From: Neoconidiobolus thromboides FSU 785
Taxonomy: Eukaryota > Fungi > Entomophthoromycota
Length of the DNA stretch: 59,265 nucleotides
Reading direction: 5' to 3'
NCBI GenBank assembly: GCA_025603075.1
Contig: MU626386.1
Coordinates: forward strand, 1 to 59,265
Positions 34,153 to 41,343 of the stretch are shown piece by piece. Each line of letters starts with the position of its first letter. Within the stretch, counting starts at the first letter, position 1. The notes beneath the pieces are model-generated. The model saw nothing but the letters and a program-made list of their open reading frames with translations, was not told the DNA's origin and searched no databases. The position numbers and the translations under genes were made by a program.

Positions 34153-35479
34153 TTAAAAAGCATTAAATGCTTCAAAGTTTGGCATTGTTGCTAATAAAGT
34201 AGATAATTGATTAGCTTTATCTTCTTCTTCTCTAGCTTCTTCTTCATCAAATCCATTTTCCTCTAACCATTTTTTAGGTAATGGTGCCAATTGAGGAACT
34301 TTAGTAACTTTACCTAATTTTTTGTCTAATAAAGCTTTTAAATCTAAAGTTCTACCCGATTTTTTAGTTTCATATTTCAATGATAATAATAATTCATCTA
34401 ATGTTTGTCCTTTAAATTTATCTAAGACTGGATTGGCCCCAATTCTTGGTGGTCTTACTGTTCTTGCTCCTGGGGAGCCACTACCGGGTGTAGCTACTTG
34501 AATTCTTCTTGGATATTCTGGATATTTATAACAATAATAAGGATGTTCTGTATCAAAAGTAGATTCTGCACTGGTTTTAAAGGGAGGTAACATATCTTTT
34601 CCATGAACTGTCTTACGATATTTCTTACCATCATATGGATCCGATTCGGGGAATTTTTGTTGCCATTGCCACCATATCATATCGATAAAGCAATGATGTA
34701 GAAAGAAAATGGGACTAAAATAAAAAATAATTTAATTAATAATTAATAATCAATAATTAATAATATTTAAACTAAAGTTAAACTTCATAAACTTACTCAT
34801 TAGGTGAATGCATAGGTGCAAAATCACCAGGATAAGCACCAATGCCATTATGAGGTCCCCCATGGTATAACTCTAATCTTCTAGAAAAAAATGAAAAGTT
34901 TTTTTCATTTAATAAAGCAACAAATTGTTCTGTAGTTGCAAATGATTTGATTTTATCTCCATTGTTATAACTTCTCTTTAAACAATGTGGATCTGGGAAA
35001 TTCAAATTGAAATTGGAAAAAGGACCATCCCCGATACACCATCCAATACTACTATTACCATTACCGCCCATGTATTTACTACTTAACACGGGTGATAAAT
35101 GAGGTTCATCTGAATCCAAAGTCCAATCCCAATAAGGTAAAATGATTCGTGGATCAATTTTTTGTAATGCTAATTCATATTCTCTTATAAACCGACGATG
35201 CCAAGGTAAAAAGGCAGGTCTAGAATGAGCATATGGTTTATTTTCAACATGAGTTTTACTAAATCGTTCATATTGGGATAGCCGGTCTTTCCAGGGTCGA
35301 CTGTGTAGCTTTTTTATTGCATTGATATATCGGAAATACTCTTCATTCGTTAATTCTCGAATTTCTTTACGTAGTTTTGGACTTCGACATTTGATACTTA
35401 ATTTTTGGGCTTCTGTCGTTAATAGATAGTATAAAGATACTAAAAAGAAGCCGAATATTTGATGACTTTTTAATAGCAT
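34153..35479 (-). CDS. Secreted tyrosinase (type-3 copper protein) A, 2 exons
   Basis: True ATG at 35479 (signal peptide MLLKSHQIFGFFLVSLYYLL); CuA H..AHSRPAFLPWHR; intron 34715-34796 restores SPNDPIFFLHHCFID after HGGPH (CuB). Confidence 0.92.
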
Positions 35480-35821
35480 TAAAGATATCAATAAATAAAA
35501 AAGAAAATAAAAATTGGTACAATAGTTAATAATCAATGATAATAAATTATTATCTTTCTTGATATCAATATTAGTAATCTTTAGATTGACGGATGATTTG
35601 GAAGTTGATCTTGAAAATTTTAAGAATATAAAATATTTTCCTAATTTAGTCAAAATTTATTAATCGTCAATGTCAATTAAACCTTTGAAATTTTCTTAAA
35701 AATAACTCAAAAGATCAACATTGAAGAATATTAAAATGAATAAACTCAGCTAGTTGATTACTTTTTTTTAAAAAAAAACAATCCCTACTATTACTTTGCT
35801 TCTATTAATATAATACAAGAA

Positions 35822-37138
35822 ATGCGATTGATTCCCATTCTTAATAATTTAATAGTAATTGTGTTATTATTACTCCTCCATGAAACTCAAAGTTTAACAA
35901 CGGAAGAAGAAATGCGATTAGGTTTCATCGTGAATTATCGTAACAATAATTCAGCCATTATCCGGAATGGTCAATGTATTAAACCAGCGTTGAGACAAGA
36001 AATACGAGATTTAAGTAAAGAAGATTATAATCGATTAGTGTATGCCATCAATAAATTACATGAAAGAAAGCCTAATGAACGGTATACAAAATTCGAAAAA
36101 ATGGTACGATTACATGTAAGTTATTATGATATAGCTCATGGGGTACCTGCCTTTCTTCCATGGCATCGATATTACATTCGTTTATTTGAATTAGAATTAC
36201 AAAAGATTGATCAAAATATTGTATTGCCTTATTGGGATTGGTCCCATGATGCTCGCCATCCAGAAAATAGTCCTGTATTAACAGATTACTATATGGGTGG
36301 ACAAGGTGATAAGCGTCAAGATTATTGTGTGAAATCAGGACCATTTAAAAATTGGATGACTTTGGTAGATTATCCTCATTGTTTATCAAGAAGATATGAT
36401 GAAGGGGAAGTTTGTTCACCTTTTCCTAATCCTGAAGAAGTATTGTTTTTAACAAATATGAATTTATTTTCAGATTTTAGTTATGAATTGGAAATGGCTC
36501 ACGGCTCCCCTCATACTGCTATCGGTTCTGATCCAGGTGATTTTGGTATTTCGATTTCTCCCAATGACCCTTTGTTCTATTTACATCATGCTTTTGTTGA
36601 TTTAATCTATGATCTTTGGTTAAAAAAGAGGAATTTATATAATTTTAAATATGAAGGATTTGCATTCAATAACTTTCGAGTATCAGTGAATGATTTATTG
36701 AAACCATTTAATCGAAATGTATATTCAACATTTAATTCTAAAACCAATTTCTTTTGTTATGAATATGCAGAATATCCAAGAAGATTACAACCTAATAATG
36801 AAGTTTATCCAATTAAAAAAGAAGAATCTAGAGCTATTAAATTACCAAGAAATAAATTTACTAATCCAGCATTAAGTGAATTAGGTTTATTAGACGTTAA
36901 TTCTGTATTAAAAATATTACAATCAAAAGCAGTTAACAATACTCATAATAGTAATGGAGCTGGTAGATCAAGTTCTATTTTTAATAGTGAAAAATTAAAA
37001 CCAAGGAAACCATTGCCAGAGCGATGGTTAAAACAAAATAAGTTTGATTCAAATAAGGTGCGTCAAATCGAAAATAGGAATGAACAATTAATTGATGCTT
37101 TTAATAATTTACCAGTATATGTACCTTTAGCTGAATAA
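35822..37138 (+). CDS. Secreted tyrosinase B, intronless, 438 aa
   Basis: Signal peptide; CuA LHVSYYDIAHGVPAFLPWHR; CuB AHGSPH...SPNDPLFYLHHAFVD; C-terminal PLPERWL...FD motif shared with tyrosinase A. Confidence 0.93.
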   Translation: MRLIPILNNLIVIVLLLLLHETQSLTTEEEMRLGFIVNYRNNNSAIIRNGQCIKPALRQEIRDLSKEDYNRLVYAINKLHERKPNERYTKFEKMVRLHVSYYDIAHGVPAFLPWHRYYIRLFELELQKIDQNIVLPYWDWSHDARHPENSPVLTDYYMGGQGDKRQDYCVKSGPFKNWMTLVDYPHCLSRRYDEGEVCSPFPNPEEVLFLTNMNLFSDFSYELEMAHGSPHTAIGSDPGDFGISISPNDPLFYLHHAFVDLIYDLWLKKRNLYNFKYEGFAFNNFRVSVNDLLKPFNRNVYSTFNSKTNFFCYEYAEYPRRLQPNNEVYPIKKEESRAIKLPRNKFTNPALSELGLLDVNSVLKILQSKAVNNTHNSNGAGRSSSIFNSEKLKPRKPLPERWLKQNKFDSNKVRQIENRNEQLIDAFNNLPVYVPLAE

Positions 37139-37577: not shown

Positions 37578-38130
37578 TTAATTCATACCGCCTTGCATTT
37601 TCATATTTTCTTCTTGAAATTTAGCATTGATCCTTTCAGTAGCTGATAAAAATTTTTTAACACATAAACTAATGCATTTATCCTAAAATTAAATTAAATT
37701 AAACTTCAACTTCAAATTATTATACATGGTAAAAAAAAGATTATCAAATAACCGTTATATAAAAAATAAACGGATTGAAATCAATTCTTTGTAATTAATT
37801 ATAAAAGAGGAACTTATGCTTACCTCTTTTGGTGAAATTGAAGATGAAGTAAAATCATTAACACAAGAATCAAAGCATGATTTAGTGAGATTTAAATAAG
37901 ATAACATTACTTCATTTTCCTATAATTTAACTGTTAATTACTAATATTCAAATAAATAAATGAAACCATAATGAAAAAATGGTTTATATTGTCAATATTT
38001 TAATAATAAATAAATAAATAGATAAATAAATAAATAGATAAATAAATAAATAAATAAATAAACTTACTTGTTTCTTGTTTAAATATTCTTGTAATTTTTT
38101 TTCTTCACTTGAACTTAAACCACGATTCAT
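37578..38130 (-). CDS. TIM9: Small Tim chaperone Tim9-like paralog A, 3 exons, 87 aa (not in ORF track)
   Basis: Exons 38130-38068, 37919-37824, 37682-37578 translate to MNRGLSSSEEKKLQEYLNKKQ/ENEVMLSYLNLTKSCFDSCVNDFTSSSISPKE/DKCISLCVKKFLSATERINAKFQEENMKMQGGMN; twin CX3C with 15-aa spacer and the CVNDFT Tim9 signature. Confidence 0.9.
38006..38062. repeat. (TAAA)n microsatellite with TAGA variants inside TIM9-A intron 1
   Basis: About 14 tandem tetramers. Confidence 0.85.
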
Positions 38131-38242
38131 TTTTTAATCTAGTTTTTAATCGATATAGTAAAAACAAACAATAGACATTAATATTTTAGAAGATAAATGA
38201 GTTCAAATGGATTGCAAAAAGTAAAGAGAATTGCAATTATTG

Positions 38243-38258
38243 GATTGGAATTCCAATC
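38243..38258. promoter_or_regulatory. Perfect 16-bp palindrome GATTGGAATTCCAATC (two inverted CCAAT boxes) in the TIM9 bidirectional promoter
   Basis: Self-complementary sequence near the middle of the 205-bp spacer between divergent ATGs; an extra ATTGG lies immediately upstream. Confidence 0.6.
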
Positions 38259-38335
38259 TATTCAGATATTAATTGACATTTTAAAATCAAAAATATTATC
38301 TTTTAAATAAAAATAATCAACTATTACTATTTAAA

Positions 38336-38718
38336 ATGATTGATCCAACTCGAATGAATTATGAAGATCAATTAAAATTTAATAGAATACTAACTAAGAT
38401 ACAAGTAACTTTTATTTTGTATAATAATAAATTTAACTCTTAATTAAATAATTAAAGCAAAAAGACACGATTGATTCCATTATAAAATTAAATGAAAGGT
38501 GTTTTATTGATTGTAATAGAGATTTAACCACGGATTTAATAACTGAAAAAGAGGTGAATAATAATTATCAATTATTTAAAGAAGTTAAAATAATTCATTT
38601 TATTTAGAATAAATGTTTAGAGAAATGTGTGTTTAAATTCTTTTTAGTATCCGAAAGGTTATCGAAAAGATTAAGTGAAAATCAAGAAATTAAAAAAGCA
38701 TTAAATATGGAGCAATAA
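38336..38718 (+). CDS. Small Tim chaperone Tim9-like paralog B, 3 exons, 91 aa (not in ORF track)
   Basis: Exons 38336-38404, 38458-38553, 38608-38718 translate to MIDPTRMNYEDQLKFNRILTKIQ/QKDTIDSIIKLNERCFIDCNRDLTTDLITEKE/NKCLEKCVFKFFLVSERLSKRLSENQEIKKALNMEQ; twin CX3C, 15-aa spacer, same phase-0 intron positions and 96-nt middle exon as paralog A. Confidence 0.85.
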
Positions 38719-39515
38719 CGGAAGTGAATTGGAGTGGAATAGGAAGTTTTTTTACAAGAATAATAGAAAATTTTAAATTGTTATGATTTTAAATTTATTA
38801 GAAATGGTTTTGAATTAGATTGATTCTTTTTTTAGTCACTTTTTATAGAATTGAGATATGTTATCATAGTTTATTTGATAGGTAAATTTCAAATGTTTAT
38901 ACAAAGGTAATGTATATTTTTCACCATTTATCAGATAGAAGATAATTGATTACTTATATCATTTTACTAATAGAAGATAAAATAATAATAGTCTTTGTTT
39001 TCAAGCTTGTTTTATAACCTTATTTTATTCAATCTCAATTTTAAAATTTTAATAAAATAATTGATTTTTTTATCAATATAGTAATTATTTTTTATTTTAC
39101 AAAGCGTTTATCTTTATTGATTTATAAATTAAATTAGTAAATCCATAACAAAAATTAATATATAAATAAAGTTGAATAATTTATAATACAAATTGATTTA
39201 CATAACAAGTAAAGCTATTTGGCCACTTATTCTAAATTGAAATAACTCAAATTCTAAAAAACATTCTCACCAAAAACGCCTAAATCTCTTTCACCAATCA
39301 ATTTAATCAAAACTATTCAAAGTTGTTCATTCCTTGGTTCTCTTTCTTGTTCTAACCAATAGAATCATCTTATCTGTCTTTCTTTTCCAACTAAAAACAC
39401 CAAGAACGCCACTCGTTATAAACAACCAATCAAATATTATTGAATCACTATTGATAAAAATTAATACTTGGAAAATTCTTTATTTAATTTTAAAGCAAAT
39501 CGAGGTCAATAAACA

Positions 39516-41343
39516 ATGAGTGAACATTCGAGTACCTTAGCCGTTTTATTAAAACGATTAGAACAAGCTACCTCTCGATTGGAAAGTTTATCTATTTCAA
39601 AAAGTAAAAAGGAGGATTCTAAACCTAGTGAAAAATCAATTGTATCCACTGCAACCTTATCCAGTTCCAGTGAATTACCTGAAAGTATTAAAAAGTACGA
39701 TGAAAAACTTTTATCTGCTATTCAAGAATATAAATCTCTTTCCTCTTCTCTTGATCCATTAATTTCAAGTCAAAGTGACTTAATTGAATCTCTTTACCTT
39801 GAAAGTAAAAAAATATTACCATTGTCACTTCAATGTAAGAAACCAAGTAGTAATGAGAAAGTTAGTGAAATTTGGTCTTCAAGTCAAAAAATTTTAGATC
39901 AAATATTGAATATCACCGATAATAATAGAGCTTCTCCTTTTTTTAATCATTTATCTGCTGTATCCTCAGGTGCCCCTGCTTTTTCTTGGTTTTTAGTTGT
40001 AAGTGAATTTTGAATAGATAGATTTTTTTAGAAGTACAATGAATTAATTATTTTAACTATTTAGGAACCAGAATGTGCTTCTAGTGTTAAAGACCAAATT
40101 GAATCAAGTCAATTTTATGGGTTTAAAGTGATTAAAGAATATAAAGAAAAGTAAATTTTAAATAACAAAATAGAAAATTAAAATAAATAGAACTAACATT
40201 GAATTTTAGAGATCCAAAGCATCATGAATGGATTAAAAGCTATTTCAAATTATTAAATGAATTATATGATTATGTTAATACTTACTTTAAAACTGGGTTA
40301 ACTTGGAATCCAAATGGTATTGAATGGAACAATTCCCTATCCGTTTCTAACAACACTACTTCACCACCACCAAAACCACCTAAACCAACAAGTTTAAAAT
40401 CAAGTTCAAATACTAATTTACCACCCCCACCCCCACCCGCTCCATTATTTCAAGATTTATTAAAAGAAGAAAATGATAATAATAATAATAAAGGTGGTAT
40501 TAATTCTATTTTCAGTGAGATTAATCAAGGTGAAAACGTAACTTCAGGACTTAAAAAAGTGGACAAATCTCAGAAAAATCAACCTCCTTTAAATCAAGTA
40601 GTTCCTCCAGCTAGATCAACTGGTAAGTCAATTCTATAAATGTAAATATTGAAGCTAATCGAATTTTTATAACAATATTAGCTCGTCCATCACCAGGTAA
40701 AGTGACCCCAGCTTCCATTAAAGAAGCAGAGACTAAATTGGATGGGCATAAGTGGTTAGTTGTAAGTTTCAATTAAATTAAATTAGTTAATTATAATATA
40801 ATGATATTAATAATTCTTGTTAATTTTAATTAGCAATATCATCAAAGTGGTATGATAACTGTTGAACCAACAGAGTTTAAACAATTGGTTTATATCTTTA
40901 ATTGTAATAATACAACTATTGAAATTAGAGGAAAATGTAATGGAGTTATATTAGGTAACTTAATAGTTTAATATTACAATTAAGTAATATATAAGTAACA
41001 TTTCATTTTTACAGATAGTTGCAAAAAAAGTGGTGTGGTATTAGACACAGCTATAGCTTCTGTGGATATTATTAATAGTAGTTCATGTCAAGTTCAAATC
41101 CTTAAAAGTACTCCTATGGTAGTTATTGATAAAACGGATGGTTTACAATTATATTTATCTAAAGAGGGGTTGAATACTGAAATTACTACGGCTAAATCGA
41201 GTCAGATTAATGTATTATTACCAACTAAGACAGAGGTAGGAGACGAGGAAGTAGAAGACTTTGTTGAAAGAGCTATTCCTGAACAATTTAAAACTACTAT
41301 TGTAGATGGAAAATTGATAACTACTCCTATTGAACATGAATGA
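39516..41343 (+). CDS. SRV2: Adenylyl cyclase-associated protein (Srv2/CAP), 6 exons
   Basis: LLKRLEQATSRLES N-terminal motif, NHLSAVSSG, poly-Pro PPPPPAP, WH2-like SGLKKVDKS, C-terminal beta-helix (VVIDKTDG, TAKSSQINVL, IPEQF); introns 39999-40064, 40151-40209, 40623-40681, 40762-40833, 40955-41014. Confidence 0.93.

Follow-up and report, generated by a model that had tools for sequence, protein, structure and literature searches.

Two divergently transcribed Tim9-type genes in Neoconidiobolus thromboides, a probable product of an old local inverted duplication

The window analysed here is a stretch of 59,265 bp from contig MU626386.1 of Neoconidiobolus thromboides FSU 785, an entomophthoralean, insect-pathogen-related fungus of the Entomophthoromycotina. 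It is AT-rich, with a GC content of ~23–30% around the locus in question, and carries two three-exon genes, here named A and B, which lie head to head on opposite strands and encode small Tim proteins of the Tim9 type (Table 1). The original prediction, made from the letters alone, described the two as a hidden pair of deeply diverged TIM9 paralogs. They are hidden in the sense that the list of open reading frames (ORFs) misses them; in GenBank both are annotated, each as a "hypothetical protein". The spliced product of A is letter for letter KAI9293456.1 (P0001, 87 aa), and that of B is letter for letter KAI9293457.1 (P0002, 91 aa). Both models were searched exon by exon, and then through these identical database proteins.

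Every structural detail of that description was confirmed: two genes of three exons, start codons 205 bp apart, twin CX3C motifs with a 15-residue spacer between the second and third cysteines, phase-0 introns, a middle exon of 96 nt and, by hand count, identity at 10 of 32 residues between the middle exons. The cysteines occupy positions 36, 40, 56 and 60 in A and 38, 42, 58 and 62 in B. The introns interrupt the two genes at the same positions, 14 residues before the first cysteine (after a Q) and two residues before the third (after KE). Over 76 residues the proteins are 33% identical, and at the DNA level nothing is left of an inverted repeat between the two genes beyond AT-rich noise. Both proteins are of ~10 kDa, with no presequence judging by eye only, and their spacer falls within the 11–16 residues typical of small Tims. 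The (AAAT)n-like simple repeat at 37996–38076 occupies much of the first intron of A.

Table 1. Coordinates of the Tim9 pair, its intergenic region and the gene of the Tim10-like protein P0021
Feature	Coordinates	Strand	Description
Gene A, exon 1	38068-38130	-	ATG to conserved Q, 21 codons; product P0001
Gene A, intron 1	37920-38067	-	148 nt, GT..AG, phase 0; contains (AAAT)n-type simple repeat
Gene A, exon 2	37824-37919	-	96 nt; first CX3C (CFDSC) and CVNDFT; Pfam match
Gene A, intron 2	37683-37823	-	141 nt, GT..AG, phase 0
Gene A, exon 3	37578-37682	-	second CX3C (CISLC), KFL..ER..FQE, stop TAA
Divergent intergenic region A/B	38131-38335	.	205 bp
Perfect palindrome ATTGGAATTCCAAT	38244-38257	.	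CCAAT box in both orientations
Gene B, exon 1	38336-38404	+	ATG to conserved Q, 23 codons; product P0002
Gene B, intron 1	38405-38457	+	53 nt, GT..AG, phase 0
Gene B, exon 2	38458-38553	+	96 nt; first CX3C (CFIDC), ER before it as in standard Tim9
Gene B, intron 2	38554-38607	+	54 nt, GT..AG, phase 0
Gene B, exon 3	38608-38718	+	second CX3C (CLEKC), VFKFFLVSER, stop TAA
P0021 gene	L003:1450-1866, near 352682 of its contig	-	diverged Tim10-like, 102 aa

The family assignment of both proteins is clear. Against the Pfam family PF02953 (zf-Tim10_DDP), with a cut-off of 22.3 bits, A scores 61.4 bits (5.7e-17) and B 44.9 bits (8.1e-12), and the genome scan, exon by exon, gives concordant matches; with such scores a chance resemblance to small Tims can be regarded as excluded. 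Among all solved structures, the yeast Tim9 is matched at E-values of 2.1e-18 by A and 4.9e-13 by B, and the human Tim9 at 1.4e-12 and 2e-8, respectively. The best Tim10 value, human or yeast, is 7.6e-5 for A and about 3e-3 for B; Tim8 is matched by B at 0.18, and human Tim10B by A at 2.7e-4. In the same set there is no match at E < 10 of B to human Tim10B (7cgp_J), or of either protein to yeast Tim12 (6lo8_F). The yeast Tim9 is also the best solved match of the second exon alone, both in A (4.9e-5) and in B. Exon 3 of B, taken alone, matches human Tim10 best (0.012); a Tim10-like identity of B was set aside in view of the tree, the positions of the introns and the full-length scores. In the Atlas, B has Tim9 clusters as its neighbours, and its model aligns to an ascomycete small Tim cluster with a template modelling (TM) score of 0.84; with exon 2 as the sole query, the Atlas feature search yielded weak leads only. 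Small Tims have a helix-loop-helix fold held by two disulfides and are imported by Mia40. B retains a hydrophobic residue both seven and four places ahead of its first cysteine (−7 and −4), a pattern that fits the Mia40 signal.

The phylogeny included A, B, 20 fungal Tim9s from metagenome loci and the other small Tims of this genome, with L093 and L109 left out of the alignment as rows that read through introns. A, B and the 20 fungal Tim9s are split from Tim10, Tim8 and Tim13 with support of 93/93. Within this group A and B are sisters at 89/48, with a branch length of 3.02 for B vs 0.39 for A. The scores against solved structures, the Tim9 clade and the Tim9-type introns all bear out the predicted TIM9 paralogy, and both proteins are best classified as Tim9-type.

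The exon structure common to A and B is real, as predicted, and is not private to the pair. A scan of metagenome contigs for Tim9-motif DNA yielded 107 loci. Two single-copy Tim9 genes read directly from metagenome contigs, L077 (27% GC) and L095, have the same two intron positions and the 96-nt middle exon; L099 and L101 have the same introns and middle exon as judged by their splice flanks, and L052, L089 and L106 have at least the intron after KE in common with A and B. Since single-copy Tim9 genes are built in the same way as A and B, this structure is the ancestral structure of the fungal Tim9 gene. It documents the Tim9 ancestry of B and a duplication at the DNA level, and says nothing on the date of the duplication. 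The introns of the Tim10 pair of this genome differ from those of A and B. The first intron of Tim13 lies five residues before the first cysteine, and the distance of its second intron from the second cysteine equals that in A and B.

Relatives of B were sought in several ways, each with limited reach. None of the 107 metagenome Tim9-motif loci has a B-like neighbour, in a sampling too poor to show absence. A word search with the exon-2 ORF of A and with full-length A returned only A, from an index insensitive to short diverged proteins, and an exhaustive representative search with exon 2 of B (32 aa), capable of detecting close relatives only, returned B and two spurious repeat proteins. Exact look-ups of B and of Tim8 in public assemblies gave no match, and are too insensitive and poorly sampled to show absence; a metagenome scan with the A and B alignment gave 600 pattern matches with none confirmed, which does not show absence either. 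The second match of the Tim9-motif scan in L012 is spurious, as it lies inside a large acidic protein. On the metagenome contigs L010, L015 (for instance at 761–1311), L043, L046 and L081, from another eukaryote, two Tim9-like genes stand in tandem and in one orientation, ~130–200 bp apart. Local duplication of Tim9 is therefore not unique to Neoconidiobolus thromboides.

Genes A and B are transcribed and spliced. Eight public runs contain parts of the window, and four of them (X1, X2, X6 and X7, from four studies) were compared over 1701 bases. The exons of A are joined in contigs of X1, X2 and X7, and those of B in contigs of X1, X6 and X7—three studies for each gene—and all four introns are skipped at the predicted GT..AG borders. 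We take these contigs for transcripts because genomic DNA would retain the introns. In X1, X2 and X7 the contigs of A continue at 38077 after 37919 across intron 1, leaving the last 9–10 letters of exon 1 unplaced beside the masked repeat, and the joint at intron 2 falls at 37681/37823 (cut +1). In X1, X6 and X7 the joints of B fall at 38404/38458 for intron 1 and at 38551/38606 (cut +2) for intron 2. The contigs begin at 38131–38142 for A and at 38314–38316 for B; the 3′ untranslated region (UTR) of A extends to at least 37535, and that of B to about 38906–38981. The splice junctions that the original prediction proposed to look for are thus present in transcript-like contigs, whose RNA nature is our guess.

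Several peculiarities of individual runs were noted. No contig of X6 lies on gene A. The X2 contig of A is identical except for an extra T in each of two coding homopolymer runs (after 37652 and after 38094). Neither insertion recurs in the contigs of A from X1 and X7, which makes sequencing error the probable cause. X2 also holds two versions of the last exon and 3′ UTR of B (38606–38981), one near-identical to the window and one ~6% different, which suggests that the sample contained two alleles, nuclei or strains. In one X7 contig 37379 is followed directly by 38286. The 906 bases left out have the non-canonical ends GA..AA, and one flank of the joint is no more than 21 letters long; another locus or a chimera is the probable source, not splicing.

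A whole-assembly profile scan found six small Tim loci in the 24.6-Mb assembly, all of them annotated. Besides A (Tim9) and B (diverged Tim9), these encode Tim8 (P0005, 88 aa, intronless), Tim13 (P0017, 94 aa, three exons), Tim10 (P0020, 78 aa, 9e-11 vs yeast Tim10) and a diverged Tim10-like protein (P0021, 102 aa, 7e-4 vs Tim10 and 0.023 vs Tim12). Neither the profile scan nor genome searches with A and with B revealed a third Tim9-type locus in the assembly, in which A and B are the only Tim9-type genes. In P0021 the loop between the CX3C motifs is 18 residues long, and both termini are extended. Its gene lies ~113 kb from the standard Tim10 gene (L002) on the same contig, and the two have in common a phase-2 intron four residues before the first cysteine.

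The six small Tim genes also resemble one another upstream. The pentamer ATTGG (the reverse of CCAAT) occurs in gene orientation 92–127 bp before the ATG in 6/6 small Tim genes and at 1/20 control ORF starts; the distance range was picked after inspection of the data, the 20 controls were taken from the window, and elsewhere 300 nt before the ATG were considered. A and B have a single palindromic ATTGG/CCAAT element in common (38239–38257). Within it, the perfect palindrome ATTGGAATTCCAAT lies 79 bp before the ATG of B and 114 bp before that of A, and occurs once in the window, with 0.03 occurrences expected by chance. This suggests a promoter element common to the small Tims, by which B and the Tim10-like P0021 would be regulated together with the standard members of the family. 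The factor is presumably the CCAAT-binding complex.

The likely position of B in a small Tim complex was modelled as a hexamer of three copies of Tim10 (P0020) and three of B. The model scores 0.82, with 0.00 for the best control; on calibration, 51 of 78 solved complexes and 2 of 108 mismatched pairs attained the mark. The predicted local distance difference test (pLDDT) value of the partners is at least 82 (82–83 for B), with a contact agreement between runs of at least 91%. Every copy of B contacts two copies of Tim10, and residues 58–70, including VFKFFLVS, are part of the interface. The original prediction saw in VFKFFLVS a hydrophobic helix. It is no separate helix, and corresponds instead to the conserved K-F-L stretch that follows the second CX3C motif, and because it lies in the modelled interface with Tim10, the model argues against its being a free membrane anchor.

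That helix had been part of a broader proposal, by which B would be a small Tim that docks on TIM22 and evolved independently, a functional analogue of the animal Tim10b that would replace one Tim9 in a membrane-bound hexamer. The independence of origin is supported: B has no relation to Tim10b or Tim12 beyond the family level, and those proteins arose in Metazoa and in Saccharomycotina (PMC7523481). Animals also provide a precedent for a docking subunit derived from Tim9 (PMC7523481), and B is somewhat more diverged than A, with its longer branch (3.02 vs 0.39) and a higher nine-residue hydropathy peak (2.04 vs 1.44). Against docking, B has neither an N- nor a C-terminal extension relative to A (91 vs 87 aa), and matches it in isoelectric point (pI, 7.61 vs 7.60) and in overall hydropathy (grand average, GRAVY, −0.66 vs −0.71); what is hydrophobic in it is the conserved K-F-L segment, which the model buries against Tim10; and it has diverged far less than docking subunits have, still matching yeast Tim9 at 5e-13 and neither Tim10B nor Tim12. 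P0021, a much more derived Tim10 paralog, suits the role better: more derived than B, with extended ends and an 18-residue loop, it appears the better candidate for a Tim12-like docking subunit. No positive evidence points to a TIM22-docking role for B, which we consider unlikely.

The presence of P0021 invites another reading, in which B and P0021 are a matched second pair and form a Tim9′–Tim10′ hexamer of their own, with distinct substrates, beside the standard complex of A and Tim10. Tim9 and Tim10 are each represented in the genome by just one additional gene, each pair with its own intron pattern, and the same upstream ATTGG element precedes all six small Tim genes. On the other hand, B passes when modelled with the standard Tim10, and so needs no special partner in the model; and P0021, at 7e-4 vs Tim10, is much more diverged than B, and the two duplications need not be coeval. 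We regard such a second complex as improbable.

The two copies of Tim9 have both departed from the family pattern. If a position counts as conserved when no fewer than 80% of 20 other fungal Tim9s keep it, A keeps 20/34 and B 17/33 of the conserved positions, against 29–34 of 34 in those 20 Tim9s, 30/34 in L095 and 27/34 in L077. By this measure A itself is an unusually diverged Tim9. Generally fast evolution does not account for this, the Tim8 of this species being 56–65% identical to the Tim8 of three distant fungi; AT-richness alone was set aside as a cause, as the equally AT-rich L077 (27% GC) keeps 27 of its 34 positions. The retention is complementary in part, as had been predicted: of the 33 positions scored in both proteins, 13 are kept by both, seven by A alone, four by B alone and nine by neither. 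A alone keeps a Y, the VN and F of CVNDF, and the FQ and N of FQEQN; B alone keeps the R before the first cysteine, the D in the first CX3C motif, the S of SER and the R before FQE. B has NRDL where Tim9 has VNDF. A relative-rate comparison of B and A gave 18 vs 14 (p 0.48) with the Tim9 of metagenome locus L100, whose sequence is that of the solved yeast Tim9 chains, as the outgroup, and p 0.01–0.09, with B faster, for several other outgroups. B thus appears to be somewhat the faster-evolving copy.

The public contigs also show coding differences in the pair. In two runs there are contigs a few percent away from the window sequence. Of the listed coding differences B has eight, six of them synonymous and two of them replacements (T5A and A86V), and A has two, both synonymous; all eight cysteines of A and B are retained. 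At 17.5% synonymous sites, the probability of at least six synonymous changes out of eight is 6e-4, a value that ignores transition bias and rests on a partial list of differences.

This pattern bears on whether B might be a duplicate without function, or one in decay, whose transcription merely persists through the promoter it shares with A. B keeps only 17/33 of the conserved positions, has lost the VN and F of CVNDF, and has no relatives outside its close kin in the representative search with its exon 2, a short query. Yet its reading frame is intact and its introns are correctly spliced; the four cysteines, the 15-residue spacer and the hydrophobic residues at −7 and −4 are in place; the listed differences are six synonymous vs two replacement; and the hexamer model is confident. 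A, moreover, is nearly as diverged (20/34), so that B is not singled out. Decay of B is, in our judgement, very improbable.

The explanation we prefer, and consider probable, is an old local inverted duplication of Tim9 in which both copies remain functional and B occupies Tim9 positions. The duplication would have taken place at the DNA level, in the lineage of N. thromboides, and would have copied a Tim9 gene that already contained its introns. Both genes would be transcribed from the one 205-bp divergent promoter, spliced and held under purifying selection, and their products would be ordinary soluble small Tims of ~10 kDa, with twin CX3C motifs and no extension. After the duplication each copy would have lost a part of the conserved Tim9 residues, in a partly complementary manner; such a loss would fit either a division of labour or a relaxed constraint shared between two isoforms. 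B would most likely take the Tim9 places in the intermembrane-space hexamer that passes carriers to TIM22, with a Tim10-type subunit on either side of each copy. The gene structures, their expression, the assignment to family and subfamily, the uniqueness of the pair in the genome and the conservation pattern are direct results; we infer oxidative import, membership in the hexamer and division of labour.

Several considerations weigh against this explanation. That the public runs are RNA is a guess. The tree is built on a short alignment: the approximately unbiased (AU) test keeps a placement of B outside all other Tim9s (p 0.26) and disfavours its placement with Tim10 weakly (p 0.096), which tempers the 93/93 grouping with Tim9 obtained in the phylogeny that the original prediction had suggested. 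The list of coding differences is partial, and three differences in exon 2 of B in X7 are not itemised. The hexamer score may reflect the model's memory of solved Tim9–Tim10 complexes, and does not discriminate which member of the family is bound. A division of labour would be read from residue patterns only. Finally, no B-like protein was found elsewhere, in searches too insensitive or too sparse to show absence.

The pair can be set beside three known small Tims. Yeast TIM9 and human TIMM9 are like A and B in length class, twin CX3C motifs, the 15-residue spacer and a helix at the N-terminus that closes with the conserved Q; the gene structure of A and B is that of other fungal Tim9s, and B was modelled like Tim9 in an alternating ring with Tim10. 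They differ in being present in one copy vs two here, and A and B keep 20 and 17 of ~34 conserved positions, as opposed to 27–34 in other fungi. The animal Tim10b (TIMM10B/FXC1) is, like B, a Tim9 duplicate (PMC7523481). It is metazoan in origin, 103 aa long, carries a C-terminal extension and is docked on TIM22, while B has no extension; B is not an ortholog of Tim10b. Yeast Tim12 is likewise a lineage-specific additional small Tim in a fungus, but is derived from Tim10 and docked on TIM22, whereas B is of the Tim9 type. By type of descent, the counterpart of Tim12 in N. thromboides is the Tim10-like P0021 (102 aa), and not B.

Fixed duplications of small Tims in carrier import are known from animals and budding yeasts: Tim10b goes back to a Tim9 duplication dated to the base of Metazoa, and Tim12 to one of Tim10 within Saccharomycotina (PMC7523481). 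According to the same source, it is not known whether comparable expansions took place in other fungal lineages (PMC7523481). Our literature searches found no papers on small Tim paralogs in Entomophthoromycotina; the sole paper naming both Tim9 and Conidiobolus is PMC7523481, whose Tim12/Tim10 analysis stays within Saccharomycotina. The A/B pair is a further lineage-specific duplication of a small Tim, with no indication of a new kind of function or mechanism. At least one early-diverging fungus accordingly has extra copies of both small Tim partner types, in the form of B and P0021, and A and B offer a tractable case for the splitting of an essential chaperone subunit between isoforms, each with different residues lost. 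A bolder and rather doubtful conjecture is that Entomophthoromycotina independently recruited B from Tim9 and P0021 from Tim10 as a joint hexamer, specialised or docked on TIM22. If true, this would be a third origin of accessory subunits of the TIM22 pathway, and the first to involve both partners.

The Tim9 pair is not the only divergent pair of paralogs in this part of the window. Directly beside it lie two head-to-head ORFs with tyrosinase domains, at 34793–35653 on the minus strand and 35822–37138 on the plus strand, with an identity of 47% over 199 residues. A stretch of 4.5 kb thus appears to have undergone local inverted duplication twice. Downstream of B, the first ORF (39516–40013, plus strand) matches CAP_N, found in N-terminal domains of adenylyl cyclase-associated proteins, at 1.6e-20.

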